Below, in pieces: positions 24,206 through 61,478 of a DNA stretch of 64,000 nucleotides (the stretch's first letter is position 1; the number at the start of each line of letters is the position of its first letter). The stretch lies in the NCBI GenBank assembly GCA_965112735.1, contig OZ218963.1:1116001-1180000 (forward strand). Reading direction: 5' to 3'. The position numbers and the translations under genes are program-made. The notes beneath the pieces are model-generated. The model made no database searches. It worked only from the letters and a program-made list of their open reading frames with translations, and was not told where the DNA came from. This DNA is from Phaeosaccion multiseriatum. Taxonomy: Eukaryota; Protista; Ochrophyta, other classes.

Positions 24206-24472
24206 TCGGCCCCTGACAAGGTTCTGGGTTCCAGGTTCTGGCCGGCGCCAGCCGGCCAGGTTCCAGGTTCTGAAAAAAAACGTATAGTAGGTTCCAGGTT
24301 CCCCGGAAAAAGCCGTGTAATAAGGCAATGATAAGGTCCCCTGAACCTGGGTAGAACCTGGGTTCCAGGTTCTGGCCGGCGTCAGCCGGCCAGGTTCCAG
24401 GTTCTGGTCGGCGTCAGCCGGCCAGGTTCCAGGTTCTGGCCAGGGTCGCCTCAGAACCTTGTCAGGGGCCGA
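24206..24472. mobile_element. MITE, TCGRCCCC-terminus family (GGTTCCAGGTT subtype)
   Basis: Perfect 21-bp TIR TCGGCCCCTGACAAGGTTCTG; 7-bp flanking duplication AACACAC (24199-24205 / 24473-24479). Confidence 0.9.
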
Positions 24473-24657
24473 AACACACACAAAGAAAAGGCAGAGATGT
24501 TTTTCAAAAAAACCATCCACTGCCATCCGGAAATTTTGAAACTGTAAGTGGTCCCCCCTCTTTTTTTTTCTTTCTCTCTCTCTCTCTCTCTCTCGCTTCA
24601 TGAGTTCGGTGGACAGCCCTTTCTCTCCCCCCGTCCGTCACCCCTCTATCTCTCCTC

Positions 24658-27219
24658 ATGGGGTCGGCGGACAGCTGGTACGACCCCCTCCTCTTCTTTC
24701 TTCAACACGGAAAGTCTTCGAGCTCCAGCGTGGACTTTATCAAAACAAATGAGGCCCTCCGGCGATTTATCCACAAGCTGCGGATGAAGATGTCGGACGC
24801 TTCTCGGCTCTATCTTATCTACTCCAAGATAGACAAAGACAACTCGGGAAGCATCGACATCAACGAGGTAAAGCCCGGTCGTGCATCACCAGGCAGTTCT
24901 CCCTCTGCCTGCCTCCCCTCTCCTCTCTCACACCCTGTCCTTCACGTTCTTTGCCTATTTCGAAGCGAAATACTCCCCGCCTACATCAAGAGCTTTGAGC
25001 GTATCCGTGCCTTTGTTGCTACTCTCTCTCGCTCAACCTCATGCTCTCTCCAGGCAGCTCCCCTTACTCTCCCCCTCCTCTCCCCTCTCCCGCGCTTTTA
25101 TCCTGTGCAAGTTCTTTGCTTATTTCCAAGTGGAAAACACGGAGTATAATCGGAGAGCATTTCGTTTGCTGAGCTTCGAGGAGACAAGCAAGCACCTCCC
25201 TGTCAGCCATTACGAGCTCACTTGGGAAGAGGTGAGCGACCCTTGACACACCACTCCTGGCTGGTGCCACTGATGTGTCCGTAGTCACCCTCTCCGGCCC
25301 GATCCTCCCTCGCCCTATTATTTTGTGCATCCCCTCGCTTGTCTGATAGTGCTACCCTCTAGCCCACCTCTCTCCCCTCTCTCCGTGCTCGCCTTTCCCC
25401 CCCCAAACCGGGAGCACCACATCCCTTTCTTATCCCGCCCACCTTGCTTCCCATCTCTTCTCTCTCCTAGTTCTTCATTTCCCTCATAAACTATGGAACG
25501 CTCACCCACGAAACACTCGTGAGGTTCGCCTTCCACATGCTCGGCGGAGGCGACGCCGTGGTGGATCGAACGGACGTTCAACACTTCATGAGGATGATGT
25601 ATGAGGACGCCACCAAGGCTGAACTCAACACACAGGCCGTCATGGGCATCGTGCAGACAGATCAGAAGGGGTACTTTGGCTGGGAAGACTTTGCCAACGT
25701 GTCGGCAAGGCTGTCGTCAATTCTCTTTCCTGCCTTCACTCTCCAAAGAAAGATCCGAGGCCAGATCCTGTCACGCAGGTTTTGGGACAGCACCACGCGG
25801 AAACGGAAACGGGTAAGTGAGTCCTCCCTGGGAGGAAAGGCTCTCTGAGCCCTGGCGGCAGATGCGCATTTCGTTGTGGTTGCCGTCTGATTCAGGACGT
25901 TGGCCTTGCTCGGAAAGTCCTCTTTACTCTCTTGCTCGGCGACTTGCTTCTGCGCGTGACAGGCCTTCCCACGGCTAGACTATGGAGCGGACTTGATCAC
26001 GGAGTACGAGGTGTATCGGGAGGAGGAACTAGAGAGACAGAGGGGAGGCAATCGACGAACTAGCGTCATCAAGAGGGCCGTCAACAAGAGGGTCGAAGCT
26101 CAGTTGAAGAAGGGGGGTAGAGCGGGGCAGCTGGAGGAGTCACCTGCACCGAACAAGGAGGAGGAGGAGAACACGGCCGACGACGCTGGTGACGATGGCT
26201 CCGACGGCAGCGGCGACAAGAGCCGTTCAGGGAGTATCGTAGGGCCCTCCGCGGCCTCGGGGAGTGCGCAAAAGAGCGCCGAACGGAGACGCAGCACACG
26301 GCGTGTCAGTACCGCTGCCACCACGCGGAAGAGGTCGTCTTTGTTAGTGACGGGAGCCGACCCCAACCTTCACAACGAGCTCAAGAGTATGGCCAACTCC
26401 AAGGAGCGGCGCCGATCGAGCGTCAAGCAACGCGTGCGGGTGGCGGCGGCAGCAACAGATGAAGGAGCGGCCGCTGATAGTAGAAGAGTATCGAGCATGC
26501 GACCGCCCTCCGCCTCCGCCCCCCTGGAGAGTTCTCTGGCAGTGTCTGTGGCCAGCCCGGGCAGCAGCCAGCACTCGAACCATCCATCACCTGCCGCCTC
26601 TCGAAGGTCGAGTCAGGTCCTTGACGAAAAGAGAAGAGCTTCTCGCCGGCTCTCGGGGGCTCAAGGGAGGGGTGTAACTCTTTCCAGTCCCGAAGACAAG
26701 AAGAAGGGCAAGGGAGAGGGCTCGGACGACGAATCTCTTGTCAGTGGCGCACCTGCAAGTAGCGGCAGCCCGTACAGGCGAAGGTCATCCACTCGAGAGA
26801 GGAGAGTGTCGGCAGCAGAAGCCCCCGCCGCCACCCCTTCTAGTCCGTCTGGGCACGGCTCCCCTTCCCGGCGGGCCTCTGCCAACGGAAGGAGGCGCTC
26901 GTCACAGCACAGCAAAGAAGGAGGAGGAGCAGCAGTGACAGGAGCGGCCAGTGGGGGCAGCATCAAGAGAAAGAGCATCTTCGACGGCTTGCAAATCAAA
27001 GAGGTGCAAAGCGTGGCAGGAATGGGGACGAACGGCTCGGGGGGAAGGGTGCAGCGGCCAAGCTTAAGTGGGGGGCCTTACGCGAGGACGTCCATTGGAG
27101 GGGCGGGAGACATGGACAAGGCGCGGGCACAGGCAGAGGGCAGAAGCGACCCTCGGGCCATCGCCAAGCGCCTCAGAGAGGCTGAGCAGAGCCAACCGCA
27201 TGGAGAGGCGGGGGGGTAG
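24658..27219 (+). CDS. Calcineurin B-like EF-hand protein with N-myristoylation motif and long disordered Ser/Arg-rich tail
   Basis: Starts MGSADS. EF loop DKDNSGSIDINE, then LVRFAFHML and SILFPAFTLQRKIR, joined over GT-AG introns to a 400-aa low-complexity exon. Confidence 0.75.
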
Positions 27220-28129
27220 CAGGGCGTAGAGACATTGAGTGCCATCCTTTTCCTCCTCCTGCTGCTGCTCGATTCGGTCTATTTACACAGGAAGTCAAGG
27301 AAGAGGTCTCTCTTTTGACGGGCCTGGTGGGCAGGCAAGAGGGAGGTATGATAGAGCGGAGCGGAGCGGAGCGGAGCGGAGAGGCCATGGCTGACCGCGG
27401 GAGACCGCCGAGTCGAGCTCTAAACTCTCTCTGGCAGCTTTGCTTTATACCCTCCTCCTGTACTTACTCAAACACACTCTTTGGAATAACGATACTGTAC
27501 GATACATGGAAAAAGCTGGAGAGTGATAAAGCAAGAGGTCTTGCCTTGACCCCAATAATGACCCCAATACAATAATAATGGAAGGCTCCCGTGTGCTCTG
27601 TCTCATTGTCCTCTTCCGGAAAGCAACGACAACAAAATGGCGTTGCGTCTCATAAATTTCAATTCTTCGCTGCTTACGCCGTAGTGCCTACTGCCTCAAA
27701 GAAAGAGAAGGTGTATTGTATTGGGTTAATTAATTAGCAATTAAATGTACAAAAACGAACCTCTCATGAGATGATTAGATGTAGCACACGCAGATGGGAA
27801 GAGGAGGGAAGAACGAGTTAATTCAGTAACAATTAAATTATTTTATTTAAAAAGAGGAACCCTCTAATTAGATGATTAAATGTAGCACACGCAGTTGGGC
27901 AGGGCCAAGCTGAGCATGTTACGCGCCTCTGCTTTCCCTGAAGAGAGGAGAAGAGAAGAGCAGAAAGGAAGCACAACCAACACACACAGGAAGCAGCGCA
28001 GGCAAGCAAGCAAGCGTGGTTTGTTTGTTTGCTTGTTTGTGAGTGAGTGAATGAGTGAATGGCCTCATGTGCCTGCGATGCGAGCTAAACATTGGAGGCA
28101 ATCCGGGCCCACTTCTCAGTAGGGCTCAT

Positions 28130-29250
28130 CTACTGACGGTCGGGCCCCTCTCTGGAGCCAGCCAACGCCTGCTTGACTTGGTCCTCCTCACCTTCCAATT
28201 GCTTGTTGCCGAGCATGTTGAGCTCAACGAGGTTAGTGAGCTGCGAGAAGGAGCCGGGTACCCGCCCCGTAAAGTCGTTCTTGTCCAGGTATAGACTCTT
28301 GAGGTTGGTGAGTCTCCCGAGGGACTCGGGAGGAGGGCCTGTTATCCGATTGTGGCGCAAGCTGAACATCTCGAGCTTGGACAAGTTGCCCAGGCTCTCT
28401 GGCAGAAGTTCACTCAGCTGGTTGTTGTTCAAGTACAGCTGCAAATGGTGGAGGGAGGGGGGACGCGAAAGGCCGAGGGCGGTAGGTAGCAACAGGACAT
28501 TAGACGCCCTCCCCACGACCAACGCATGAAGAAGCTCTGCCAAGCTGGCCTGTTTCCAGACCATTCCAAGCTGGCCTGTTTCCAGACCATTCCAAGCTGG
28601 CCTCCTTGCAGACCCTTCCATCCACCCCGCCCGCCGAGGTGATGGAGTGGGTTGGGAGTCGGTGGCAGTGCCCACACAAAGAAAGGATCCGTCACACACA
28701 CACACACGCACTCACCCCTTCCAAGCTCTCCAGCCTGCCCAACGACGCTGGGACGGGTCCCTCGAGATAGTTGGCATTGAGCCACAGCTCCTTCAGAGAG
28801 CGAAGTTCCCCCAGCTCCTCCGGGATGGGACCACTGAGCTTGTTGTCCCGGAGACTCATGTACGTGAGGGATGAGAAGTTGCCGAAGGAGGCGGGAATGT
28901 TGCCTACCGTCACGGTTAGTCGGCAAAGGGCAGGGGAAAACAGGGGGGTTGAGAAGAGGAGGCATCCACACGAGGGAGGCTCTTCCTTACTTAATCTCGT
29001 TCCTACCTGACAGTTCATTCCCGGCCAGCGACAGCTCCCAGAGATGAGAGAGGTTCCCCAGACTGGCCGGTAGCTGGCCCGTCAACTTGTTCCCAGCCAA
29101 GTACAGCTTCCGCAGGCAAACCAACGCCCCGATGCTTGAAGGGATTTCGCCCGTGAGGTTGCTGTGAGTGAGTGAGTGGCAAACCGGAAGGGAAGGGAAG
29201 GGAAGGGAAGGAGTGTCGAGCGTCGAAGCCGAGTCGTGAGCATAGCCACC

Positions 29251-29284
<34 letters not shown>

Positions 29285-30217
29285 TCATCAACAACAACAA
29301 CATCAACAAGGGCACCCGCTCTGACACAAGCATGTCTACCCAAAGCACAGCACCCCCCTTACCTTCTGCCCAAATCGAGCCATTCGATGGTGGTGATGGC
29401 GGTCATCCGAGGGGGGATGGGTCCGTGTAGCTCGTCGTGGTAGTCGAGAATGACGGAGAGGGGCGCCAGGCGAGCTCTGGTCCACTCTTCGTTCTCCTCC
29501 AATGAGGCGAAATACGCCACAAACTCCCCCAGCCCACGAATGTGCACCTTTAGGGGTTTGCCGTTGCTGCTGTCGGACACGAAATGGGCACAGCACAGGG
29601 TCGGCAAGCGCTGCGTCCGTCAGGGATTTGAAAACGCAGCAGCCTCCCGCCCCCCCCAACAAACAAATGTCGTCTACTTACACTCCCCTCCTGTTTGGTA
29701 CACCAAGACAGAACGTACCTTTGCTCGGCCGAGCCCCCCCCCCCTCTGTCCTCTGCCGAGGCCCTCCTCTGCCCCAACCTGCCGACCTTCAGCCAGCTCC
29801 TCGACTGGGAAGTGGCAGCAGCGACTTTATACACATCTCTGAGAGTGAGGCACTGCGTCAGAGACTCGCACACCGTAGCCGTGCCCAGAGTGGACAGGAT
29901 GGACACTGGGCCGGCAAACGCAGCAGCAGAAGCGTCTCCCGTTCTTCTCCGTTGATGTGCGGGACTGATGTGTGGACATTTGGGATTGGGGGCGTAGGAC
30001 AAGTGCCTATTAGTGTCTTGCTGCTATCCGGTGCCAGGAGGAACGGTCAACGACTTCGGATGACACACAAGAGAATGCATCAGCCTATCAGCCTGAAGGA
30101 GGGCCAAGGGTGGAGTCCAGGAATTGCCCGAAACATCCTCAAACCCCTGCAAACTCACCTTTGCGCCGCTCCTTCCGGCGCTTGCGGCACGCTTGCATCC
30201 TCATCCATGGATTCCAT
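28130..30217 (-). CDS. Leucine-rich repeat protein (plant-specific-type LRRs), no evident signal peptide or TM
   Basis: Repeats LxxLxLxxNxL(T/S)GxIP in several exons. Probable start MESMDEDAS at 30217. Confidence 0.85.
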
Positions 30218-30590
30218 GATGTCTCAGCAGCTGTGAGCCCTCCCCCAAAGAAATTACTCTGTTCAGGCCTTACGAGAGAACGGCTCCTTGCCAAGCATTG
30301 GAAGGAGGAAACGCGTAGAGTGGGGAAGTCCACCCAAGATCAGTCAGGTTAAAAGCGGGAGGAGATGTATTTCCTGCCTGCCTGCCTGTCTCTTTCGCTG
30401 GAAAAAACTATCAAAAAACAAAACAACAAGCCCATTCCCCCATGTCAATGAATCCGCCCGGGTCACTGACTTATCATGTGCTTACTTTTCCCCTTGAACA
30501 TTTTTTTTTTTCATCTTTTTTTGGGGCCTCCACTCCCTCTTTCGGTGCCCTCTCTTTCCAGTATCTCCCGGCTGGGCATTCAACTGAGCC

Positions 30591-32522
30591 ATGCCTAAGG
30601 GGAAGGAAGAACCGATGTTTGATGTTTATGAAGAGGTTGATGCGCCCATTACAAAGTAAGCCTTGTAGGTATTATTCGTGTTTTTGGTCGCTCCCCATTG
30701 TCGACAACAGCTTGGCAGCCCCCCCCCTCTCTCTGGCTTGCGTCGAGCTAACGAAATGGCTGCTTTCCCCTCTCGCTGGGCAGGATGATTGTTGGGCTGG
30801 TGGTGTTGCACCTGGTGAGCGCGGCGGTGTTCAGCAAGGTGAAAGCCTTATCGGGGAAGCCCCATCTCATGGCGCACCAGCTGGTGTGTCTGGTTGTCAA
30901 TCTGTGGGGCTGCTACTTTGGTCTGCAGGCGTGGTTCGGAGGAGGGGTAGACGGCGTGAAGGATCGCCTCTATGCATTTGTACCGGCCGCTTACGTCATC
31001 GGAAGGGTGAGCAGACTCTTGGGATGGGCCAGGCCTGGCATCGGCTCGGTAGTGGACGAACTGTACCACATTGGTAGTGGTGGAGTGGATCGTGCTGGTA
31101 ATCTATGATTCTGGTTTAGACAGGGGACCGCTTCTTTTGACGAGTGACGAGGAGAAAAAGCTTCCCGTGTCTGTTTGAGTGGGGGCGACAAGACTGGACC
31201 CCAACGCCCGCCTACCGTACCCGTGCTTGCCGCCGCTTCTCCACACACCCGTCCCAGCCCAACACCGCGCTCCAGGTGTACGACTTGTTCGCCACAGTGC
31301 TGATGCCTGACCTGCGCAAGGCAGAGATGGTGGTACACCACATGGTGTCGGTGCTGCTCGGCTACTTGCTTCTTCGAGACAGGTATACGGGCGGGCGGCA
31401 AAAGAAGACAAAACGCCGATTTCGTTAAGTCTGCTCGGGCTTCCTTTGACAGCTTGTTGGGTGATATTCCCCTCGAATTACGCCAATCTGCCTTCTGTTC
31501 CGCGCACGGAGATGACTGACTGACAGCCGCCACTCCCGCTTCTCTCTGCCGCACAAACGCCGTATGGACGCTGCCTGGCCGGCACAGGTACTGTAACTAC
31601 TACTCCGTCTTCTTCATGGGCCTGGGGGAGATCTCCACCATCCCGCTCGTCTTTGTGGTAAGTGGAGTCGTGGGTTCCAAGGCGGGATGGTCTCGTCTCT
31701 CGTCGCGTGCCTGACTCAGTACCCTCCCTCCCTCCCTCCCTCCCTCCCTCCCTCCCTCCCTCCCTCCCTCCCTCCCTCCCTCCCTCCCTCCCTCCCTCCC
31801 TCCCTCCCTCCCTCCCTCCCTCCCTCCCTCCCTCCCTCCCTCCCTCCCTCCCTCCCTCCCTCCCTCCCTCCCTCCCTCCCTCCCTCCCTCCCTCCCTCCC
31901 TCCCTCCCTCCCTCCCTCCCTCCCTCCCTCCCTCCCTCCCTCCCTCCCTCCCTCCCTCCCTCCCTCCCTCCCTCCCTCCCTCCCTCCCTCCCTCCGTCCC
32001 TCCGTCCGTCTGTCCGTGCATCCGTCCCTCAACTCGCAGGACGTGCTAAAGTACGTGCCCCAGCTCGCGTCCGGTGCTGTGATGAACGGTCTCCGCCAGG
32101 CATTTGCCTTGTTGTTCCTGTCCATTCGGGTGGTGTACTGGCCTTTTATCTGCTGCGACTTTTGGTACGACAACTACACCGCGTATAAAGGTGAGACAAA
32201 GGTGACGCTGCCCCTTCCCTTAGACTCTTGCACTATTACTGCTGCTGCCCGTGCTTGCGCGAGCGGGGAACCGCTGACTTGTGTGCTGCACACACCCACA
32301 CTCCGACTTTGACTTCACAACGATGACACATGACGAGCGAAATGTGATGCATGCATGTGGTGTGCGCCCACAGGCGACGGCTTCCACAGCAATTACGTGG
32401 CCGGGTTCTTCATGGTGGCCAACATAACGCTCACGGCCCTGCAGTTCTTCTGGGGATGGCTCATCGTCAAGGCCATCGTCAAACACGCAAAGGGCTCGGG
32501 GGGCGACAAGAAGGACCAATAA
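30591..32522 (+). CDS. TLC (TRAM/LAG1/CLN8) domain membrane protein
   Basis: Motifs VYDLF...EMVVHHMVS, FFMGLGEISTIPL, FALLFLSIRVVYWP and LTALQFFWGWLI. C-terminal KKDQ resembles a dilysine ER-retrieval signal. Confidence 0.88.
31722..31995. repeat. (CCCT)n microsatellite upstream of an acceptor in a TLC gene intron
   Basis: Direct inspection. Confidence 0.95.
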
Positions 32523-33559
32523 TGAGCAACCGGACTCATATTTTATTTACACAGTGGGAGCCTTTAAGGGTGTTCTGCCCTTTAATAAATCATTCACAGC
32601 AATACGTACGGTCTACGCGCTTGAGGAAGCGGGGGGGGGGGGCTGGTGGCCCCGAGGTACATACACATCCCCCGTCTCTACATCTACACGCGGCTTCCTC
32701 CCTATCTCACTGACTTGGTAGTTACGCACACGAGCTCACGCGATCACACCCGTCGAAGAGCGCGAGCTTCATTTCATGTGCTGTTGTTGAAGACCCATGA
32801 GATTGCCAAAAAAAAACTTCAACAGCCCAGCCGGATCTCCTCTCTCTCCTCTCCTGGTTGACTGAGCGTCGAAGATGCTCTTCAATTTAAAGATCCTCTA
32901 CCTGAAGTCTGCAGGAGAATCGCGGGGGCCTCAGTGCCTGCGCTGTGCTTGTTGCCCCCTTGCCAACTCACGCTCCTTCCGCTAGGACGGCGTCTTCGGA
33001 AGCCTTATTGAACGCAATTCGCAGGGCAGCTTCTGCGGAGAGTGTGGGGGGGTCTTTTCCGATCTGTGAGGGCAGAACGAGAGAGTAATCTTAGAGTTGC
33101 GTTAAGTATTCTGGAAGAGAAGGAGGGGGGAGAGAGGGAGAGGGGGGGGAAATGGTAGAGATAGGAAACCTACCTTTCTTCCACAAAAGCCCATCGATCT
33201 TGGCCACGAACAGGGGAGCACCCCTTGCTAAGTGGAGATGAAGCGTCCTCCTGCTGCTCAGCACTTGTGCTCGGCGCCGGCACGTTCATTGTTTGCGTTG
33301 AGAACGACCCGGGAGTTGTAACGAAGTTTGGAGTTTCAGTTTGGTGGAACAATGTTGCTGACGTAGTCGAATGTCAGGCGGTAGGCATATATATACATAG
33401 CCCGCCTCTAGGCAGCCTCCCAGTGACCGTGGGCGCGTGCGTGGTGCCGCCCAGCCAGTGGGTAGCAGCACACCTGTAGGTCTGCACTCCTCGTAGGGCC
33501 AGCGAGGCGTTCCCATGCAATGAAACTGACTACTCTTTGCACTCTGGGCACTCCCGCGG

Positions 33560-33724
33560 TGCCGCCGTCCGCCTAGTTGGCTGGCGTCTGCCCTAGGCCG
33601 CGCGGGCCTCCAGCCCGCCTAGGCCGCCTAGGCGGCGGCATATAAATAGGCCCACTACGGCCCTCGCTAGGCCGGACAATTTTCCCAATAGGCCTACTAG
33701 GCCGCTAGGCGTGCATGGGGCCGA
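33560..33724. mobile_element. Partial TCGRCCCC-family element (CTAGGC subtype), right end only
   Basis: Ends ...CTAGGCGTGCATGGGGCCGA with many internal CTAGGC/GCCTAG copies; no intact left TIR seen. Confidence 0.45.
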
Positions 33725-34491
33725 CTTTGTTGGTGCAGAGCGCAAGTGAGGAGAAGAATGTCGCATCTCTGGGTGAGGATGTACAGGAGTGGTTGATTGT
33801 CTGGGTGGGTGAGCGAGTGGAATTTGAATTTTAGTATAGAGCGAAGTGACTCTGTACGAGCGACGTAGCTAAATCGTTTTCGTGCCTCCGTAGTTCGATC
33901 GTTTGGTGACGTCCAAACAACTTGGTGCTAGCGCTATGGTGTACGTGAATGAGAGAGAGGGTGCGTGCGTGACTGCGTCTGCGCAGAGTAAGCGGTGCCA
34001 GGCCCTGCCTGCCCCGGAAGAGTCCATGTAAGACGGGGCCTCACTGAAGTCATTGACTCATTGCCTTGTGCTGGCAGGCCTCGAGAAATAGCCCCCCCCC
34101 CCGGGTGCCCATCCGACAGCAGCAGCAGCAGCTTGTCCACGAAGGAACCCAAGTGCCCTTCTTGCACAGTGTCAAGACATCATCAAGTGTAGATTTTATA
34201 GCCGTGCTTTCAAGTCACAAGTGCAGAATGAAGCGCACAATAAACCCTAACCCAACCCCCTCTAACTACTTACTTAGCCCCTTCTAAACTACATGTACTT
34301 ACTTCCCCCGCCTCTTCTAAGTACTAACTTTCCCTTCCCCTTGTAAACTACATGCTCTTACTTCCCCAGCCTCTTCTACACTTCCTCTTTCCCCTCTCTT
34401 CTTTTTCCCTTCTAAACTGCATATACTTACTTCCCCTGCCTCTTCTTCCTATCAACAACTATTCAATTCTTCTGCTACGGCGCACAAGACA

Positions 34492-35550
34492 CTATGGCCA
34501 CTGTAGACCTGAGCTCGCTCCACTGCTGCGGAGGCAAGTATAGCTCCCGTCGCTCGCCTCCACAGTCCCCTCCGTCGTCTTGACAGTGCTGTCCGTTGTG
34601 TCTGTCGCATTGCTCTTCTGGAGCTGCCTCGCTTCCTCCTTCTCCTCTTGATGATGCACCACGGCAAGAACGGAGGCAGCGGAGTGCCGTCGTGGGGGCG
34701 AGAAGCTGAAGTGGTTGACAGGAGCAGAGTTCCCCCTCTCCTCGCCGGCCGCTCTTGTCTCTTTCGCTCCAAGGCCGAGTCCAGGAAGCGTCTTGGTCGA
34801 AAACACCCGAAGTTTCTCGGACACTAATTCTCTGGGGCGCCTCCACAGCCACATGAAAGGGAGGGTTTTCGGACCACCTTTCCTCTGCTTCTTTTCTTGT
34901 GAGGCTACATCGCTCATCCTGCTCGACGTGCTAGTGCTGTTGGTGCTGTTAGGGGACGTATCGCTCGTCTCCGCTGAGTGTGCACTTGATGCTCGGCGAT
35001 GTCTCATACTCTCCGCAAAAAAGTGTTCACCGGCAGCCACCGCTTTCTCCTCTTTCTGCTGTTGTCGTTGTCGTTGTTGCTCTTGCTGCAGCCTCTTGTG
35101 CCCAAGCGCTTCCTGCCGTGTCTGGCTTTGTCGCTGAATAACTTGGTCCTGAGGCTCCAGCCAAAACCTAGTCGGACTCATCGATCTAGGTCGAACATTG
35201 TCATCACGACGAACAAAGGAACGAGGAGGAGGAGTGCTGCTTCTTCGTCCTGCCCTCCTTGCGAGCTCTTGCGTCGCGTACAAGCGGTCACTGACGCCAC
35301 CACCTGCTTACTGTTCCTGGCCGGAAAGACGGTGATGATGGGAGCCAAGGCTTACGGCTCGGTCGTCGTGTCCACGTCTGAGTTCGCCATCAGTCGCTCG
35401 CCGGCAGGGAGACCACGCCGCTTTCCCTCGACCCATAGCATAATCGACCTCCCTCCTCCCATCGTCAGGTGCCCCATACCCAGCGATGCGAGACACGTCT
35501 TCGGGTCTAAGGACTGAATGCTCTCTTGTTCGTTGCGATGAGGAGTCCAT
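34492..35550 (-). pseudogene. Hypothetical intronless ORF interrupted by one in-frame TAA
   Basis: ORF MDSSSQ...GQEQ (TAA 35308-35310) continues in the same frame as AGGGVSDRLYATQELARR... for about 270 more codons. Confidence 0.4.
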
Positions 35551-49339: not shown

Positions 49340-49532
49340 GGTGAATATGGCTTGCTGTTGATCGTCTGATTACCAGTTGTTGTGCATAAAAGAGAGAGAG
49401 AGAGAGAAGTTGAAGATACAACAGCCATGGCGGCCGTTATTACCACCCCTAAATAATAATAAAAAAAAAAAATAACTGTGTCAAGCGAGCAGCACCCCTA
49501 AATAATAATAATGTCTTTTGTGTCAAGGGGTA

Positions 49533-49733: not shown

Positions 49734-49929
49734 CGAGACCCAGATAGACACTAAAACCCGCATGGCCCTTACTTTTCGGGGTTTCATTCTGCAGGGCCGT
49801 AGAACTGAACTTGATGGAGGTTGGAGGAGGTCTGACGAGGGCAACAACATGCGCATGTTCAAACTCGCTAAAACAGTAGTTTAGGGTGGAAGGGGGGGGG
49901 GGGGGGTCGTTTGGGTGTCTGTAAAACCC

Positions 49930-50103
49930 ACGTGATTCTGAGGGAGGCGTGATTCGTGCTTCTCGGCGGTGCGCCTAAGAAATAAGGCAATGAATGACGT
50001 CAGTGCGTAGTAATAAGTCAAGGAAACGTCGAATGCGTGATTCGTGATTCTGTGCACCGCTACAGGCATTATTCGTGCTTCTCGTCCTCACGTCAGGGGT
50101 CGA
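49930..50103. mobile_element. Partial TCGRCCCC-family element (CGTGATT subtype), right end
   Basis: Ends ...CACGTCAGGGGTCGA, with internal cgtgattc / attcgtg repeats. Confidence 0.55.
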
Positions 50104-50688: not shown

Positions 50689-52134
50689 TCAGGAGGTCTG
50701 TGCTGCCTTGAGGAGCCCTTGCCCCCGCAGCAGCTCCTCCGCCTTGGCAGCGTCGCCCCTCTCCTCGGTGGGAAGCAGCGCCTCGAGCTTCAAGCCGCTC
50801 ATCACCTCGGCCATAGCTTCATCAACACCATCACTACTCCCCGTCCCTTCCGTCCCCGCTGCCACTGCCGCTGGTGCTGCTGCTGCTGCTGCTGTAGCGG
50901 CCACCGCGCCACAGAGGCTCTTCTTCGTCTCCCCGAGGGTCAGGGCAACAAACTTGGCCATGTTTCCGCCGGCCTCGCCGAAGTCATCCAGGTACGACGG
51001 GGCGGTAAAAAGGAAAGAGAGGTCAAGCCCCCGGGCCCCCGGCTTCTTTGTTGCCCCCTCTTCAGCAGGAGCGGCAGCAGGAGCAGCCGCCAAAGAGCCC
51101 AACTGCTCCGCCAAATACAGATCCGCCTTCGGCACATCGATCTGCAAGTCCGGCAAAAACTCCAATACATCCCCGAAACCCTGTGGTGTGGTGACACCGA
51201 AAAGAAGAAAAAAAAGTGAAAGAACACGCACAGGAAAGGGCTTTCAGTTTGTTGGTTTCGTTACAGTTTCTTTTCTTTTTCTTTCCTTCCACACCTCACT
51301 CTCACCTCCCTCCGGTTGTGCCTCCCCACCCCCCCCCCCCATTCCTCTCACCTTAGCAAAGCACTCATCCGTGGCAAGTCCCTCCTCCCTCAGGGCGCGG
51401 AAGAAGCCCTTGAGAGCCATTCGGTCCTTGTCCTTCTTCTCCAGACAGTGGCTCAGACAGTTGGCGACGATTGCCCAGTGGTGCTCCGGGCAGCCGAGCT
51501 CTCTCACGCACTGCATCGCTTCCTCCGCGTCTTCCGTCGTCACGAACTGTGAGATGCGACGGATGGTAGCAGAGCAGACGGGAACGAACAGATGGCAGCA
51601 GATGGGCGGTATGCCGAGTCAGAACAAGAAGAAGCGAGGAGAGGGGAAAGTAGTACAACATTTCATTCTCCCACTCGCATGCAAGGAGACAAAACGAAAC
51701 GACAGCCCCCCCCCCCCCTCTCTCTCTCTCTCTCTTCACGGGGTGGAGGTGTCTTGCTCTTCTGTACTGCCCCCCCTGCCTCCCTCCCTCCTCTCCTCCT
51801 CCCCCTCCCCCTCCCCCTCACCTCCTCGAAGGCCTGCTTGCCCTTCTTCTTGGCCTCTGCTTCCGTCGTTCCGGCGCCCGGCGCTGCCGGAGAGGCAGAG
51901 GGTCGACCGCCTAATCAGTGAGAGTGAGAAGGCACACACACGCACCACACGCACGCGCACACACACACACACACACACACATATTGAGCAGGGCGAGGTT
52001 ACGTTTAACGCTTTCGCTTGCACAAGCCCGAGACATTCACTCCGTCTTCTCCTGCTGTGCCAAACGGGAAGAGCTGCCGATGGAAAGAGAGATGGAAGAG
52101 AGAGCGAGAGCAAGAGCGAGCGAGCGAGCGAGCC

Positions 52135-52168
<34 letters not shown>

Positions 52169-53324
52169 AAGAGACATTAAGGAGACACCTGCCCCCTCCT
52201 CTGAAACTGACCTTCAGTCGACGGCGAGTCGTCCACAGGGAAGCTCGTGGCGTTGGCCGGCAGCCCGTCGATGGCGATACTCGGGGAGGAAAGGGAGGAC
52301 GAGAGGGGGGGCCTACCCGAGCCCGAGCCAGACCTCGCACTGCCAGGCGTAGACCTCTTGCTTGACGCCCCCCCTCCCGGGCTCCGGTCTCTGCTGCGGT
52401 CCTTCTTGCCGCCCTTCTTGCCGTCCTTGTCCTTGCTGCCCTTGCTCCTCCTCTCCCCGCTGCTGCTGCCCCCTCCTGCCAACGCCGCAAAGCCCCCTCC
52501 TCCCCCGCTATTGCTGCTGCTGCTCGCACTTCGCCGAAGCCCTCCTGGCCCCGCCCCCCCCTTGCCGTCCTTCCTCGACGAGCTTCCGCCAGCCCTGTGC
52601 AGCGAGTCTTGTGTGCTCTTGCTCTTACTCATACCGCCCACCTGACTCCACCCACCCCCGTCCCCTCCCCCCCCCTTACGCCCCTTCACGGGCACCTTTT
52701 CCCATCCGTCGTCCTCTCCGTCGCCCCCGCCCTTGGCGCCTCCGTCCCCTCCCCTCGCTGGCGAGGCCGAAGACGACTTACTGAGACCCGGGCTGCTCCC
52801 CCCTCCTCCTCTGGACCCCGAGCGTGCGTCTTGGCTGCCCCCCCCCCCGGATGAGCTATTGCTCGAGCTATTCCGCCCCCCTCCGCTGCCGCCACCCCCC
52901 CCTCTATACTCACGCCCTCCTCTTTGCCGACCGGCCTCGCGAGCCTTCACCTCCTCTTCCCTGTTGTTGTTCGGCGTGTCAGGTTCGGCGTGTCAGGTTC
53001 AGTTTCAGTGTATTAGGCCCTACCAGACACCCATCAACAAATCCATACTGACCATCCTTCGAGGTGCGTGAAGCAAGGAATACAGTCCAGGGGAAACCCA
53101 GCCAACCCACCAACCCACCTCACACGTAGAGGCAGACAAACATACATACACACATACATACAGACAGACAAACATACATACATACAGACAGACAGAGACA
53201 AACATACACACGTACATACAGACAGACAAACATATACACATACAGACAGACAGAGACAAACAGAGTGCTCGCACAAAGTGTTTGCTGTGGACTTTCCTGA
53301 CTTCTTCTACCACCCCCTCTCCCC

Positions 53325-53357
<33 letters not shown>

Positions 53358-54842
53358 CTTTTGCTCTCCCCTGTGCCCTTTGACCCTGGATGAACGACCT
53401 GGCAATGTCCTGGTGCACTTGCGCGATGGTCTTCGCCTTGTCCACCTTCCTCCGGGGCACCCAGTGATTCTCGCGCAGCTCCAGTAGGTCCGCCAGCATG
53501 AAGCGAAGCCTGTGTGTCCAATCGCAAGGGTCAGTTTGCAGGTTTAGTTTCAGCTTGATGTTGATGAGTTTCAGGGTAACGAGGTCTTCGATATCAGGAC
53601 AGAGCAGAGCTCACACACCTGCTGCTGACGCTCTTGTCCTCGGAGATCTTCTTGATGGTCTTGAGGTACCTCTTCATCGCCTGTGTGTGTGTGTGTGTGT
53701 GTACATATACGTAAGGTACTTAGGAAACGGGATTAACCGCACATCGAACCCAGTCTGGGCCAGTCTGGGAGTAATGAGGGTGCTGGAACCCTACCCTCCC
53801 CCCCCCCCATCCTCCTCCTCCCCCCCCTCCCCCCCCTCCCCCCACAGACCTTCGCACACTCCTTGGCCTTTGGGTTGACGGGGGACTGTGCGCTATCGTC
53901 CAACGCCCTCCCCACACAAGTCATGAGCTTCACCATGCACTCGAGCTGTTCCTCATCCGGCTTGTCGGCGTCGCCAAGGAGGTCCACAAGGCTGGCGTGT
54001 ACAGCGCGCTCCTTCAGAAGGTCCACCTTGGGAATTAGAAGCATATAGGCAGGACAGGGCAGGGGGAGGGGGGAGTTGTTTGAAAGCGTTAAGTTGCGAG
54101 GAGTATCAAGAGGAAGAGTGTTGCGAGGAGTATCAAGAGGAAGAGTGTTGCGAGGAGTATCAAGAGGAAGAGTGGCGCTCTCTTGGAGGTCGAGCGAACG
54201 AGCGAGCGAGAGAGAGAGAGGCGGACAAAGAGGTTGAGGAGTGTGTGTTTGTTGCGTGTGGGTGAGGCGCGAGCACCTTCCCCATCTACCCTCCCTTCTC
54301 CATCCACTGCCATCTACCCTCCCTTCTCCATCCACTGCCATAAATTGAAGGCCTCACCCCCACCCACCTTGTACAATTCCCCGATGAAGATCATGTGACC
54401 GAGGTAGGCCTTTCGCAGGAGAAGTGTCTTCTCCGCCTTCTCGTCCTCCTCCAGCGTCTCGTCCTCCTGAGCGAGGCAGGGGAGTGCAGGGCGGCAGTTG
54501 ATGATACACACACACACACATAGGTATATCAGTCACTCAGTTGAGAGACAGGCAGGGCAGGGCAGTAGTTGGTGATACACAAAAACACACAAATTCTTCG
54601 TTGATTCTTCTTTGGTATCGGACTGTACTGTGTAGTGGCGACTACCCACGGTACGGTGACAACACAACGCAAGTCTACAGTACGCGTCCGTCTACACACT
54701 GGTCAGTGAATTGTAGTCTATGAGCGGTCAGTGAATTGTAGTCTATGAGCGGTCATCCCTTGGGAGGTCCTCATAAGTTTGTTCTCTTCATCCCAGCCTA
54801 CACTGCCAGTCAGCCAGCCACACTCGCAGCGTCCTCTGAGTG

Positions 54843-54883
<41 letters not shown>

Positions 54884-57800
54884 CACGCACACACACATAC
54901 ACACACACACATACACACACACACACACACACGCACACACACGCACACACACACACACATACCTGCACGGCTCTGAGCAGCTCCCCCTGGTCCTTCTCAT
55001 ACTCCTCCTGGCACTTGACCAGCAACATCTTCTTGAACTTCTTGGCCCCCTGGGCAGGCATATGGGCAAAGGAGAGTCGGACATCGACATCGACGTCGAG
55101 AACGTACCAGTGAAACCAAAAGAGTGGAGAGGGAGAGTGCAGGGAGTGAGAGGAAAGAAGCGTGTCTCGAGAAAATGACAGTTTCGGTCAGTGGATCGAG
55201 ATCAACAAACTGACTGAAAAAGTGATCTGAATCTGAAACTGAAACAGCCAAACCCTTCCCATTGACGTACGTACCTTGGCGCTGTCGCCACCGTCCACCA
55301 CCAGCCCTGGGAGGGGGGCGCGGGCAATGGCGAGGCATAACTGCGCATACATCGGCGCGAAGTGCGTCTCCATTCTCGCCTGTGCGTGTTTAGAGGTAGA
55401 GGTGTATGGGCCGGGCCAGGAGATCGACATTTAAGTATGGGGGTCCGACATTCGTCTTCGTGCCACAGGCAGCACTTGGGCCAGGTGTGGGTGCGTGTGA
55501 ATATGTGGGTGGGTGGGATAGTCCTTGCCCCTCTGATTGACTCTCGCTCAACAGTCTTGACGTCTCTAATGACTATTTCATCTCACGGACCTTGTCCACG
55601 ATGACGACGATGACTTCGTCGATGACATCCTGCGGGATGGGTGGAAGTGGGCAGGGGTAGAGAGGGAAGGAAGAGCAGGAACCAAGGGAGGGGGACAAGA
55701 GAGAAGAGGGAGGGGAGGAAGAGAGGAAGGGGCGAGAGTAGGCCGGGAGGGGTGTAGAAGAAGGTGAGGAAAAGGATATACCAAGGTGAGGTGTAGTGAG
55801 GTGTAGAAGAAGGTGAGGAAAAGGATATACCAAGGTGACGTGTAGTGAGGTGTAGAAGAAGGTGAGGAAAAGAATATACCAAGGTGAGGTGTAGTGAGGT
55901 GTAGAAGAAGGTGAGGAAAAGAATATACCAAGGTGAGGTGAAGTGAGGTGTAGAAGAAGGTGAGGAAAAGAATATACCAAGGTGAGGTGTAGTGAGGTGT
56001 AGAAGAAGGTGAGGAAAAGAATATACCAAGGTGAGGTGAAGTGAGGTGTAGAAGAAGGTGAGGAAAAGAATATACCAAGGTGAGGTGTAGTGAGGTGTAG
56101 AAGAAGGTGAGGAAAAGAATATACCAAGGTGAGGTGTAGTGAGGTGTAGAAGAAGGTGAGGAAAAGAATATACCAAGGTGAGGTGTAGTGAGGTGTAGAA
56201 GAAGGTGAGGAAAAGAATATACCAAGGTGAGGTGTAGTGAGGTGTAGAAGAAGGTGAGGAAAAGAATATACCAAGGTGACGTGTAGTGAGGTGTAGGAGA
56301 AGGTGAGGAAAAGAATATACCAAGCACCCACCCCATCACCAACTCCACCCGCTGTCCTGACACCCACTGTCCTGACGCCCACTGTCCTGACACCCACTGT
56401 CCTGACACCCACTGTCCTGACGCCCACTGTCCTGACACCCGCTGTCCTGACACCCACTGTCCTGACACCCACCTCGTCCCTGTGGCTGATCTGGTCCATG
56501 AAGGCCTGGCTAAGTCTGTCGAACTTCTCCAGAGTCATCTTGTTGAGAATGCCCCTCGCCTTGCGCATACACAGCTCTGGGCTGTCCTCGGTGGCCTGAG
56601 GAGGGAGCACAGCAACGTAAAAACGTGCGAGAAAGAAAGAAAGAGAGAGAGAGAGACAGAGAGAGATAGACAGAGGGATAGGGAGCGAGGTCGAGTTTAG
56701 TGAACCCCCCCACCTTACTCAATTCATTCACGCCACAGAGCCTTATCCTTAAGAGGCCAGTGAGGGGAAGAAATGAAGCTTCTTGAAGAGGCTCATTCAT
56801 TCTCACTCATTCCATTCACTCACCTTATTCACTTACTCACTCACTCACTCACTCACTCACGCACTCACTCACTCATCCCCTTACTCGCTCATTCATCACT
56901 CACTCATCCCTTCACTCACTCACTCACTCACTCACTCACATCCTCACTCACTCACTCACTCACTCACTCACTCACACCTCACTCACTCACTCACTCACTC
57001 ACATCCTCACTCACTCACTCACTCACTCACACACTCCACTCACTCATCCTCTCTATAACTCACGCACTCACTTCACTCACTTCCTCACTCATCCCCCTCA
57101 CCTACTCACTCACTCACTCGCTCGCCCCCTTCAATCAGTCACTCACTCACTCCACTCACTTTACTCACTTCCTCACGCCCCCCCTCACATACTCAGTCAC
57201 TCACTCACTCCACTCACTCACTCCACTCACTCACTCACTCACTCCACTCACATCCTCACTCACTCACTCACTCACTCACTCACATCCTCACTCACTCACT
57301 CACTCACTCACTCACTCCACTCACCTTCTTCTTCTCGTCCTCCGCCTTCATGTGGTCGGCTTTCCATCGACTCTCCTCGTTGACCGCGAGCGGCACACAG
57401 TCTTCTAAGGCGGGAGCAGTTTCGATAGGCCTTCGTCTATTTCCACCCCCCCGGTTTCCACTGCCTCCTCCACCTCCTCCTCTTCTATTATCATTGGACG
57501 ACCCCCCTCTACCCCCTCCTTGCCCCCCCCCTCCTCGCCCCCCCCCCCCTCCTCCTCCCCCCCCTCCTCGCCCCCCCCCTCCTCCCGCTCCCCCTCCTCC
57601 TCCTCCTCCCCCCCCCCCTCCTCCTCCTTGGCCGAACTCTTCTTTCCCATCCCACAGCAAGTTGAGTTGAGGCGGGGGGTTCAGATGATCTGGCTTGGGC
57701 GTCGCTCCGGGCTCGGGCCGAAGCTTGAGCAGCTCGGGAATGGTATACTTCCGGGATGCATACGGGTCTCCTCCTCCTCCTCTTTCGCCATTCAGGGGGA

Positions 57801-59125
57801 CAGCAAACGGCTTCCCAACCGGCGCATCGGTCGAAGCAGACGTAGCAGTTGGTGATACAGCAGCCCGTGGAGGGGATTTGCTCCGTGACCGTGGTCGAGT
57901 TGTCGTGTTGGGGGAGGGGGAGCGAGAGCGTCCGTGTGACGCCGCCTTGCCCTTGCCGGACGGGGAAGACAACACTGCTCGTGCTGGTGTATCACCAACT
58001 GCTGCTGCTTCTGCTGCTGGTGGTGACAGTGGTGCTCCTCCTGCCGATTCTGCTGCTTTCTCTGCCACCGGAGGGGCGGCGCCGGGGGGCAGGGGGGGCG
58101 GCACATCTTCCGCAGGGACGGCAGTTGATGGCGCTACCTCGTCCCCCTCTCCTCCTCCTCCTCCCCCTCCTCCTCCTCCTTCCCCAGCGGCTGCTGCCGC
58201 CGCCGCCGCCGCTGCTGCTGCTGCCGCCTCTTCCTTTCTGGCAGCCAGCCGAGCCAATCCCGACGGCGCCGCCTTCTTCCCTTCCTTTTGCTCGCCACCC
58301 TTGGCCTCGCTGCTGCAATCACGCGTACCATTGACGCCCAGCAACACGCGTTTCTCTTTATCGTCTCCTGAAGCTTCCACAGACTCATCAAACTGTAGCA
58401 CACAGAAACGCACAAAACAAACGAAACAAGGACGGGTGTTTGAACAAAGGGTGCAGGAGTCTGATCGATGCACAGCCCGCGAGAGTACCGTCATCATACT
58501 AAGAAGTTCCACAGATACGTGTATACGTTACGTACGTAGGTACGTACGGGGGCATGCACTTATGGGTGTGAGTGACCCAATGTCCCGATTTGTTCCTTAC
58601 CTTGGGCACAAAGACCGGTGCTCCCTTGTTGGGGGTCCATTCTTTCGCAGTTGCCTTAAGAACGGGCGTCTTCTCCTTGCTGACCCCTTCTCCCACAGCG
58701 GCCCCCTCGCCTGCGTCCACAGCCTTCTTCACTGGCGTCCCTTGTGTCGCCTTTCCTGCTCCTTCTCTTTCCCCTACTGCTTCTGCTGCCGCCGCCGCCG
58801 GCGCTGCCACTGCAGACGCCTTGGCTGCTGGTGAGGGTACTGGTGCTGCTGGTGCAGCTGGTGAAGCTGCTGCTTGTGCTCCTCCTTCTCCTTCTCCCGA
58901 CAAAGTCTTCTCAACAGAAGCGTCACCTTGCCCTCCTGCCTTCCCTCCCCCGCCCTTGACTTGTTGCTCAACGTCCTCCTCCTTGCCCTTGTTTGTGCTC
59001 GCGGCGGCCTCGCCACCCTCCTCCTGGCTGGGCTCGGCAATAGTCATGCTAACCGCTGCTGATGGCGTCCATTCGGAGGCCCCCGGTCGCAGCTTCAGTG
59101 CGTTCGGTGTGGTCGGCTTCGCCAT
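50689..59125 (-). CDS. EIF4G: Eukaryotic translation initiation factor 4G (eIF4E-binding motif, MIF4G, MA3)
   Basis: eIF4E-binding motif YTIPELL. MIF4G: [84 protein letters not shown]3: [12 protein letters not shown]...[11 protein letters not shown]. The start may lie further upstream (~59373). Confidence 0.93.
55752..56323. repeat. 49-bp minisatellite (~11.5 copies) in an eIF4G intron
   Basis: gtgtagaagaaggtgaggaaaagaatataccaaggtgaggtgtagtgag, period 49. Confidence 0.95.
56348..56472. repeat. 15-bp tandem repeat starting at an eIF4G splice donor
   Basis: Minus strand gtgggtgtcaggaca x8. Confidence 0.92.
56810..57323. repeat. Degenerate (CACT)n/(GTGA)n array in an eIF4G intron
   Basis: Direct inspection. 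Confidence 0.9.
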
Positions 59126-59730
59126 TGTCACTGCGCCGGCGTCTCTGGTCAACACAGAAGTCTGGAGGACGACAAAAACAACAACAAGAACACGAATAAC
59201 AAGCGAGAAAAAAGGTGTACAGTGAAAGGGCAGCAATGCTCTAAACGTGTACGGCAATGGGGCATTGCAGCAACAGGTGTGAGATCCTTGAGTAAATCCT
59301 TGAGAGGAGGGAGGGAGCGACGAGCCTTGGTGACTGACATTCCTCCCCTAGCAAATGGTTCTTTCCTGTCCATAATTAATTGGTCCTACCTCCAATCCTT
59401 CCCTTGTTACGGATGCGCTTGTGTCTTCACACAGGCCTGGACTTGTCACCAATCGAGTCCTGGTGTTGGGTGGCGGTAGCCGCAGCAGACACTGCTCCCA
59501 AGTCCGGGCACCTCAGTAGTTGGCGAGTAGAGCCTCGACCCACCGCTTACCCACACACAAGCACCAGCGCTCTATCTCCGCATATCTTCGCCGCTTCCAC
59601 ACCTTCCTCGCTTTTGCGGCGCCTCGTCGCCCGCTCCATCCAAACTAGTTTTCAGTTTCAATGCTTAGGACGACTCGACTCCAAATATAGAAACGGGTTT
59701 TCCGTCGTGTCGCTCGGTAAGTGTGTGCGG

Positions 59731-60070
59731 TCAACCCCTGACGTCGACCCTGGACAAGGTTACGGTGTGCGCCGGCCGTAATCAGTAATCAGGCCGGCTG
59801 GTCACCGGCTGTGTATCAGCAACCAGGCCAGCTGGCGCCGGCCATTTCCTCGCATAATCAGAAATCAGGCCGGCTGGCGCTGGTCATAGTCAGTAATCAG
59901 GCCGCCGCCGCCGCTGCCGGCCGTAATCTGATTACAGCCGGCTGGCGCCGGCTGTACTGAGTAATCAGATAATCTTGTCCAGGCAGGGTCGACTGGCTGA
60001 GGACGAATTACCGCCCACATTCTCGATAGAGCGCTAGCTAGCGGATAGCGGATAGTGCATCACGGGTTGA
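59731..60070. mobile_element. Composite of TCGRCCCC-family MITEs: inner element 59744-59992 inserted in an older outer copy
   Basis: Inner TIRs TCGACCCTGGACAAGGTTA / TAATCTTGTCCAGG(CAGG)GTCGA with TAATCAG repeats. Outer ends are TCAACCCCTGACG and GATAGTGCATCACGGGTTGA. Confidence 0.75.
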
Positions 60071-61026
60071 GAGGGGGAGCGAGGAGCGAGAGGAGGAGCT
60101 TGTCGTGACGAAGAAAACTGCGCCAAGCCTTGGAGCCGGCCGGTGTGTCCATATTCCCAGGCCTTCCTGTAGCCCCCTCCTCCGTCGTACCGTCGCTCCA
60201 GACGCTTCATGAGCCTTCTCGAGAAGGCAAGCAACCAGCCAGGCAGTGCGTGCTCCGGCGAGAGGGGCAACTCGTCCGCACCGTAGGTACTTGGGATGAG
60301 CAGACCAGCGTGTTGCTTGTCGCACTATAGTTAGCTCCCCCCCCTTGCTTGTCGCCTCCCTCGTCTGTGAGCGGGAGTCATCACAGGCATGATGACGGAG
60401 CAGGGCGGAGGGCCGAAGTCGCTTGTGAAGCCTTCGATCTCACAAGAGTATCAAGCCGCACCGACCGACTAGCTAGCACGGCGAAGTACGCTAAAGCACG
60501 ACAAAGCACGACAAGGCACGACAAGACACGACAACGCGGTGTCACCTCACTGACCTCCATAGAGTGCCTTGCCCCAGCACTTGACGTCGTCTCCTGTACG
60601 GACAGTGCAAAGAGAGGAGCACAACAGTTTCAGAAAGAGTCGCTCAGCCCAGCCAATCGACCGACCGCAAGACCGCAAGCTAGCAAGGTGGCCACTCTCA
60701 TATGCCAGGACAGAAGAAGGGCAACACAGCAACCACCCCCACACGTAGCGGTCTTGTAGCAGCCAAGCGGGTGTAGAGCGTGCCTCTGCTCTCGACCGCT
60801 CACCTGTATCAAGCAACGCGCAGGACGAATCGTAACTCGCCGCGATGGCCGTTGCGGTTCTACCCGTGCCCAAGTCAACAGCGGTCTATGACGTCACGGC
60901 ACATTCGTGGGTACATGACGGAGAGGCACAAGCAGGGGAGGGGGTGTAAGGGTTGGAGATGGCACTCGACGCAAACGTGAGGAAGCCGCCCACGACGTCA
61001 CGAAGGGCATTCCGACGGCGGAAAGG

Positions 61027-61126
61027 AGGAGGAGCGAGGAGGAGGAGGAGGAGGAGGAGGAGGAGGAGGAGGAGGAGGAGGAGGAGGAGGAGGAGGAGGA
61101 GGAGGAGGAGGAGGAGGAGGAGGAGG
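61027..61126. repeat. (GGA)n microsatellite
   Basis: Direct inspection. Confidence 0.95.
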
Positions 61127-61320
61127 GCGGGGTGGACGCGCGAGACACCGCCGCTGCGGCTTTTTGTAACGCCTGGCTGGTTCTTGGACGCGGTGGGGAC
61201 GGGTACAGTGGGTCTGATGCTGGCCAGTGCTTTGCGGGTGCCGCGCTTCAGAAGGGGGCCGCCCGCCTCGACTCCGCACCTGCCTCTTAATTCGCGGGAG
61301 GGAAGCAGTGCTTCCTAGCT

Positions 61321-61478
61321 TCGACCCCTGATACACTATCGCCACATTCTCGATAGCGCGCTATCGGGCCCCGGCGATAGCGGATAGCGCGCCGGCTGGC
61401 GGATAGCACGCCCCAACAACCCCCCAAAGCCGGCTGGCGCCGGCGATAGCGGATAGCGGATAGTGTATCAGGGGTCGA
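61321..61478. mobile_element. MITE, TCGRCCCC-terminus family (GATAGCG subtype)
   Basis: Perfect 20-bp TIR TCGACCCCTGATACACTATC; 6-bp flanking duplication CTAGCT. Confidence 0.9.

Follow-up and report, generated by a model that had tools for sequence, protein, structure and literature searches.

Probable lineages of one cut-and-paste transposon group behind MITEs with a constant tip and changing subterminal words in Phaeosaccion multiseriatum

Five loci in a 64,000-nucleotide stretch of the ochrophyte Phaeosaccion multiseriatum (contig OZ218963.1 of assembly GCA_965112735.1, positions 1,116,001 to 1,180,000; hereafter the window) are probably MITEs (miniature inverted-repeat transposable elements), that is, non-autonomous members of a single cut-and-paste DNA transposon group, which has divided into several lineages within this genome. 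The copies have a tip of the TCGRCCC type in common, and behind it each iterates a short word, which would serve as a docking site for the transposase of its own lineage, enzyme and site having co-evolved. We put the probability of this explanation at about 0.65, a figure that covers it as a whole: MITEs, lineages, words as docking sites and co-evolution. The window, which corresponds to C14:1116001-1180000 in a 67-Mb assembly of 22 pieces (labelled C1, C3, C14 etc.), is eukaryotic in style, with 55–60% G+C, abundant microsatellites and split genes.

Recurrence of the tip across the genome

The exact tip TCGRCCCCTGA occurs in the window at 24206(+), 24472(-), 50103(-), 61321(+) and 61478(-). 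Related tips are found at the remaining ends: TCAACCCCTGA at 59731(+), TCGACCCTGGA at the start of an inner, nested copy (59744-59992), and TCGGCCCCATGCACG, which closes the 33.7-kb locus at 33724(-). A sequence-only reading of the window had listed five loci with TCGRCCC-type tips, and all five do carry them, with just one recognisable end at the 33.7-kb and 50-kb loci.

Taken alone, the window count is weak, as the 11-mer with one mismatch allowed has eight matches where 3.8 are expected, eight being attained in 6 of 100 shuffles. The genome-wide search for the tips, which had been set beforehand as a test, is decisive, and it is on these counts that we judge the family to be real. Across the 67 Mb, TCGRCCCCTGA has 1152 matches (563+589), as against 27 (11+16) for the reversed control, and the two variant tips of the nested and 33.7-kb copies give 516 further matches against 5 in the control. 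Together, the canonical tip and the two variants account for at least 1668 ends in the genome. The ends of the TCGRCCCCTGA type lie mostly as convergent pairs, 100–360 bp apart, with 27 convergent pairs of at most 360 bp among the first 100 matches, and clean copies are bounded by flanking duplications.

Copies in the window

The copies are listed below with their flanking duplications where these were read directly; "GC palindrome" denotes GCCGGC-N4-GCCGGC, and the families are distinguished by the words given in the next section.

24206-24472, unstranded: intact 267-bp MITE of family C, with 23-nt perfect inverted repeats from TCGGCCCCTGACAAGGTTCTG and three GC palindromes
24199-24205 and 24473-24479: 7-bp duplication AACACAC of the family-C MITE, by direct reading
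33540-33724, minus strand: solo family-G end, with tip TCGGCCCCATGCACGCCTAG at 33724 and iterated GCCTAG/CTAGGC; start approximate
49928-50103, unstranded: family-F copy, with intact right end TCGACCCCTGACGTGAGG (inward from 50103); left tip truncated
59731-60070, unstranded: outer copy, old and rearranged, with tips TCAACCCC and TCAACCCG and B-type modules (GATAGCG) near the right end
59744-59992, unstranded: nested complete 249-bp MITE of family E, with tip TCGACCCTGGACAAG, word (G)TAATCA(G) and GC palindromes
61321-61478, unstranded: intact 158-bp MITE of family B, with inverted repeats from TCGACCCCTGATACACTATC, word GATAGCG and one GC palindrome
61315-61320 and 61479-61484: 6-bp duplication CTAGCT of the family-B MITE, by direct reading

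The duplications of 7 and 6 bp that the sequence-only reading ascribed to the clean copies are thus borne out by AACACAC and CTAGCT. The family-C element contains 14 occurrences of GAACCT/AGGTTC, and its 21-nt end (at C14:1140206/1140472 for the window copy) is the end found at the lineage-2 transposase loci described below. The inverted repeats of the family-B element are perfect over 20 nt and reach 23 nt with one mismatch; its word is one base from that of the autonomous element.

The other copies are less complete or older. At 33.7 kb a left partner end was searched for and none was found, so that the left limit is not identifiable; the 15-nt tip of this copy recurs genome-wide as convergent pairs 400–1000 bp apart. 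The 50-kb copy carries the doubled word GAATCA(C)/(G)TGATTC and a central scaffold in common with families C and D, and its flanks GTAAAAC and CTAAAAC, alike but for one base, form a 7-bp duplication. At 59731-60070, the outer copy, broken after 13 nt by the inner one, had been described as the older; it is old, and it is decayed and rearranged as well. The duplication of the inner copy has decayed to CTGACG/CTGGC, and its family-E tip recurs across the genome.

MITEs are shorter than about 800 bp and non-coding, have terminal inverted repeats (TIRs) and a duplication, and reach high copy number. The window copies, at 158–267 bp, have these properties, and their ends are akin to the ends of an autonomous element present in this genome, with which they have the tip, the module architecture and the duplication length in common. 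As to their surroundings, a long CTCA microsatellite (24100-24198) adjoins the 24.2-kb element, a long GAG repeat (61030-61120) lies 200 bp upstream of the 61.3-kb element, and one autonomous copy, on C4, sits within a TCAC repeat; simple repeats may be frequent landing sites.

A constant module with a changing hexamer

Every readable element is built from a module of about 30 bp, or roughly three helical turns, in which the 16-bp GC palindrome precedes a hexamer that occurs twice, at 7-bp spacing. The palindrome has seven matches in the window against 0.31 expected, six of them within three of the elements. The words are concentrated in the same way: CCAGGTTC falls inside 24206-24472 in 11 of its 13 window occurrences, GTAATCAG inside 59744-59992 in five of six, and GATAGCG inside 61321-61478 in six of nine, while all four occurrences of CGTGATTC lie inside the 50-kb copy and all four of CGGCCTAG inside the 33.7-kb copy. 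Read with the palindrome spacer as TGGC (the orientation of family F is not fixed by the palindrome), the doubled hexamers are:

ATAGCA: family A, autonomous element
ATAGCG: family B, 61.3-kb copy
GTAGCA: copy in locus L001 (C1)
GAAGCA: family D
GAACCA: family D'
GAACCT: family C, 24.2-kb copy
GAATCA: family F, 50-kb copy
TAATCA: family E, nested copy

These eight hexamers form a connected chain, every one of them a single substitution from some neighbour. In families A, B, C, D, D' and E the hexamer of the modules is also the hexamer of the inverted repeat, where it occupies positions 14–19 (15–20 in family E); the earlier observation, made for most members, that the word of an element also stands within its TIR therefore holds in six of six readable families. 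The inverted repeats are alike for 12–13 nt; beyond that, the positions at which they diverge are exactly those at which the modules do. A common scaffold with a conserved central block underlies the alignment of families C, D, D' and F, whose words are different. Copies of family D carry the D word in the end-proximal modules and retain C-type words in degenerate central modules, a pattern that we read as probable replacement of words within a conserved frame.

The autonomous element of lineage 1

Long copies with a transposase, which the sequence-only reading had proposed to look for, are present in the genome. A genome search for the PHD finger gave seven equal matches, at loci that end in the family tip. 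The 28-nt end of these elements has exactly 14 genome matches, even at 3 mismatches, corresponding to seven copies of 8350–8396 bp; where their 2-kb right-end parts overlap, these seven are 98.7–99.8% identical. The inverted repeat of this element, whose word is ATAGCA (lineage 1), measures 31 nt. Four copies are flanked by 6-bp duplications (ATACAA, AAATCA, TTATCA, CCTTCC) and three by 7-bp duplications (TAAAGAT, TCACTCA, ATACACA).

The left end consists of the inverted repeat, an ATAGCA palindrome and further modules, and ATAGCA words accompany four palindrome modules at the right end, three of which have the word doubled. A C48-like open reading frame (ORF) lies on the minus strand near the left end. 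On the plus strand, NHL-like blades are encoded by an open exon of 539 aa, and the last exon contains both an E-containing motif (ETFF..R) and a PHD finger. The exons were searched one by one, without a joined transposase model, and a word-based protein search with the 539-aa exon gave no match.

Just upstream of the autonomous copy C4:4892380, less than 700 bp from it, an A-type MITE (L037:791-1011; ATAGCA on a B-like scaffold) and a B-type end (L037:1103 onward) make up a small group of insertions of the family. The A-type MITE appears to stand between the autonomous ends and family B.

Two other routes to an autonomous copy were rejected. Long convergent 11-mer pairs on C1 (L001, L002, L003) turned out to join ends of different families, and the ORFs between these ends are host-like or without a Pfam match. 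A search with Peptidase_C48 led to three unrelated loci and to a different 9.8-kb transposon. This separate DNA transposon (L005-L012, L015-L018; e.g. C1:6834421-6844237) is present in at least six copies, 99.6–99.8% identical, with 157-bp inverted repeats from (C)ATTTAGGTAAGGG, 7-bp duplications and a Peptidase_C48 gene. It has the 7-bp duplication and the C48 gene in common with the TCG family, but not the ends.

A second transposase lineage and its word

A 314-aa piece of the transposase matches, in a genome search, the seven copies and at least ten further loci at 33–43% identity, which shows that more than one transposase lineage is present. Five of these paralogues, on C10, C7, C3, C12 and C9, are 41–42% identical to the query; the others lie on C11, C10 and C16 (one each, at C11:2201657, C10:2891745 and C16:619403) and on C1 (two, degenerate, at C1:410034 and C1:1866026). 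Most have a PHD match about 2 kb downstream, as in lineage 1.

The family-C end connects the five closest paralogues with a second word. Its exact 21-mer, which has 71 matches in the genome and none in the control, brackets two elements, C10:3419255-3423225 (3971 bp) and C12:258231-262268 (4038 bp), and both enclose paralogue pieces and the PHD finger in the expected order. Single family-C ends lie 1.7 kb (C3) and 1.0 kb (C7) upstream of paralogue copies, and another lies 236 bp past the PHD finger of the C9 copy, all in the right orientation. As there is about one family-C match per 0.9 Mb, placement of this kind in five of five cases has a chance probability of about 1e-10, and lineage 1 is therefore assigned ATAGCA ends and lineage 2 GAACCT ends. 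Two enzyme lineages thus pair with two words: ATAGCA was read directly, and GGTTC/GAACCT follows from the exact ends of 21 nt. The earlier proposal of a diversification into enzyme lineages with different words stands for these two; its further parts, binding and orthogonality, we infer.

Convergent ends of the same family are also found 4.4–5.1 kb apart at C9:2020275-2025265 and C1:6347108-6351499/6352168 (C-type and E-type). These pairs could be further long elements without the searched transposase piece.

Domains and relatives of the transposase

A whole-library HMMER search returned 31 relatives only, five of them below 1e-30. The six relatives that were looked up are unnamed proteins on short JGI/IMG or Logan contigs, and metagenome scans with P0001 and P0002 gave no match. 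P0003, a 1064-aa relative with a C-terminal PHD finger, is encoded on a JGI/IMG contig of 3952 bp, close to the 3971-bp lineage-2 element, and this contig may be the same kind of deleted element assembled alone. In the alignment of the relatives (A2), D301-x-x-H304 is nearly invariant; an E-containing motif lies near the C-terminus. These two motifs presumably resemble those of P transposases, a likeness that we take as a lead only.

The AlphaFold model of the relative P0030 has a mean pLDDT of 50, is disordered in its N-terminal half and is well folded only in the propeller. With this model Foldseek found only six-bladed NHL propellers, and a P-like fold was not confirmed; an Atlas search with P0007 gave no match. 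It is confirmed that the transposase carries an NHL propeller and a PHD finger.

With regard to the P superfamily, PF21787 (P element) has no match over the genome, a weak test in that the control was likewise without a match. At E values up to 10, the element exons and 12 relatives gave no P-family Pfam match, and sequence searches of the PDB returned PHD and NHL matches only, with no P transposase. No THAP domain was found in the relatives with N-terminal regions (P0007, P0012, P0027, P0030); a Cys-rich stretch is visible in P0007. P elements make duplications of 8 bp (7–8 bp); of the seven autonomous copies four have 6 bp and three 7 bp, none 8 bp, and the window MITEs have 7 and 6 bp.

The motif D-x-x-H after the second Asp marks a group made up of hAT, Kolobok, P, MuDR and Dada (PMC3706591). 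The duplications of 6–7 bp are those of Dada, but the absence of TIRs and the fixed snRNA or tRNA sites of that superfamily have no counterpart here: the inverted repeats measure 20–31 nt, no two of the nine duplication sequences are the same, the 14 autonomous ends have no tRNA within 1.5 kb, and no Rfam gene was found in the 64-kb window. The tips (TCGRCCC) and duplications (6–7 bp) are not those of hAT or CACTA elements, with which only the iterated subterminal motifs are common. The suspicion that a TCG tip with 6–7-bp duplications fits no common superfamily was therefore well placed, given the lack of a Pfam P-element match and the failure of two of the three Dada features checked. Judged by the Pfam and PDB searches and by the superfamily descriptions, the cut-and-paste group appears to be undescribed.

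Proposed mechanism and alternative explanations

In the explanation that we favour, the shared first 12–13 nt, TCGRCCC(C)TGAC, are most likely cut and joined by the catalytic site, and insertion would make a staggered duplication of 6 or 7 bp. The hexamer of the lineage, found once in each inverted repeat and many more times in the subterminal modules, most likely provides docking sites for the DNA-binding part of the lineage's own transposase, as in Ac/Ds, En/Spm and Emigrant. The words would have shifted by single-base steps as enzyme and sites co-evolved, and array duplication would have carried each new word through the end-proximal modules. We infer that the word is the binding site and the tip the cleavage contact, and that the lineages do not cross-react. 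It is possible, and we suggest it tentatively, that the genome holds a natural series of mutually exclusive transposase/end pairs, reached through single-base hexamer steps on a constant tip, palindrome and spacing. If this is true, the matching DNA-binding domains would yield a recognition code, together with orthogonal transposon systems from one propeller-bearing lineage.

Several observations weigh against words as lineage-specific docking sites. The pairing of enzyme and word is seen for ATAGCA and GAACCT only, and not for families B, D, E, F and G; family B, one base from ATAGCA, could simply be moved by lineage 1. No family-C end was found near the five other paralogue loci, and the two C1 paralogues have no canonical, D-, E- or G-type end nearby in the C1 listings. 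The lineage-2 copies, at about 4 kb, look internally deleted, and their pairing is drawn from the ends and not from interior modules. As they are too short for the N-terminal 400–500 aa of the longest relative, P0007, the N-terminal part appears to be deleted in them, and no intact lineage-2 enzyme was seen among the paralogue copies found. In lineage 1, the reading covered the outer parts of the element, on either side of a middle 3.3 kb (C3:602838-606151) that holds the transposase's N-terminal half, DNA-binding domain included. Finally, uniformity of the word within an element could result from array duplication alone.

The main rival explanation builds on several of these points. It holds that the intact lineage-1 enzyme reads only the 12–13-nt tip, possibly together with the GC palindrome, and cross-mobilises every family, the words being array-homogenised baggage from extinct parents. 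Lineage 1 alone looks intact, the tip and palindrome are constant across families, and the window contains clean, apparently young copies of families B and C; moreover, the lineage-2 copies appear to have multiplied as non-autonomous elements, because they are about 4 kb long and near-identical in score. However, a generalist enzyme of this kind does not sit well with the identity of the inverted-repeat word and the module word in six families, nor with the D copies, in which the new word is end-proximal and the old word central, suggesting constraint near the ends. Furthermore, no MITE has the lineage-1 28-nt end within 3 mismatches, and two enzyme lineages pair with two words. We therefore consider cross-mobilisation by lineage 1 rather unlikely.

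More improbable still is that the words and palindromes serve some other role, such as a hairpin for end processing, the binding of a host factor or of a second element protein, or escape from silencing. A 6-bp stem can be formed by GCCGGC-N4-GCCGGC, which every module has as its constant part, the element does encode a second, C48-like protein, and the inverted repeat of Drosophila P is bound by a host protein. Yet it is the hexamer that varies and not the palindrome, and the hexamer tracks the transposase lineage in both testable cases, whereas a host factor is not expected to change with the element lineage. That the loci are not one transposon family at all, their resemblance being due to chance or low complexity, might have been suspected from the window count of the 11-mer with its 6 of 100 shuffles; the likelihood of this is close to nil, as it is already refuted by the genome counts (1152 against 27, and 516 against 5), the convergent pairs, the clean duplications and the seven long copies with perfect ends.

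A change in transposase/end specificity without loss of mobility is rarely visible, since usually the diverged end-points alone survive. Here, a single genome contains a constant tip and scaffold, eight single-step words, relic words in central positions, and two words for each of which there is a matching enzyme lineage (at least two lineages in all), which makes the co-evolution of enzyme and site directly testable. The system also bears on how MITE families originate and remain mobile after their master has decayed, and it puts on record a group of transposases that goes unrecognised by current domain libraries.

Other features of the window

A foldback MITE-like element at 4810-5139 has 131-nt arms, 87% complementary, with the iterated words TTTTACGCCC and GTTTTACGAC; its tips differ from those of the TCG family. 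On the minus strand, 1087-2721 is a 544-aa open frame with multiple C2H2 zinc fingers. The nine other long frames of the window that were scanned gave no Pfam match.

Comparison with known systems

Short motifs iterated subterminally, and found also in or next to the inverted repeat, are a feature that the present family has in common with Ac/Ds (hAT), En/Spm (CACTA) and Emigrant/Lemi1. In all three systems, of which Emigrant is a MITE with the pogo-like Lemi1 as partner, the iterated motifs are bound by a protein of the element itself (PMC1636448). The duplications and tips set these systems apart from ours, being 8 bp with YARNG tips in hAT, 3 bp with CACTA tips in CACTA, and TA in pogo. Neither a palindrome-plus-word module nor a single-base word series within one genome was found in the literature searched, and the same is true of a constant tip and palindrome with a word swapped through the array, and of such an enzyme architecture.

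Dada elements (Kojima and Jurka 2013, PMC3706591) resemble the family in their 6–7-bp duplications and in belonging to the DDE enzyme group with D-x-x-H after the second Asp. However, Dada itself has no TIRs and inserts at fixed positions in U6, U1 or tRNA genes (PMC3706591), whereas the TIRs here are 20–31 nt long and the targets varied.

The likeness to Drosophila P and THAP9 (PMC7776569) extends to 31-bp TIRs, internally deleted non-autonomous copies, sequence-specific sites internal to the tip (here predicted), and perhaps a catalytic domain interrupted by a large inserted domain. Each end of a P element has a single 10-bp site; the element has subterminal inverted repeats of 11 bp and makes 8-bp duplications, and its transposase contains a THAP domain and a GTP-binding insert (PMC7776569). 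In contrast, the ends described here contain many doubled hexamers each, the duplications are 6–7 bp, there is no THAP match, and a six-bladed NHL propeller would stand in place of the GTP-binding insert.

A close parallel for many divergent subfamilies of one transposon group within one genome is provided by the P elements of Anopheles gambiae, where there are nine P subfamilies, six of which have MITE families linked to them, ten in number (Quesneville et al. 2006, PMC1562414). At their ends these MITEs resemble their own master, and in some of them the ends are hybrid (PMC1562414). The Phaeosaccion family differs from them in that it has no Pfam P-element match, that its transposase combines an NHL propeller with a PHD finger, and that its duplications are 6–7 bp and not 8 bp. 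It differs also in the structure of its ends, where the 12–13-nt tip is identical, the palindrome is constant, and it is mainly the hexamer that changes, swapped through the array in single-base steps.

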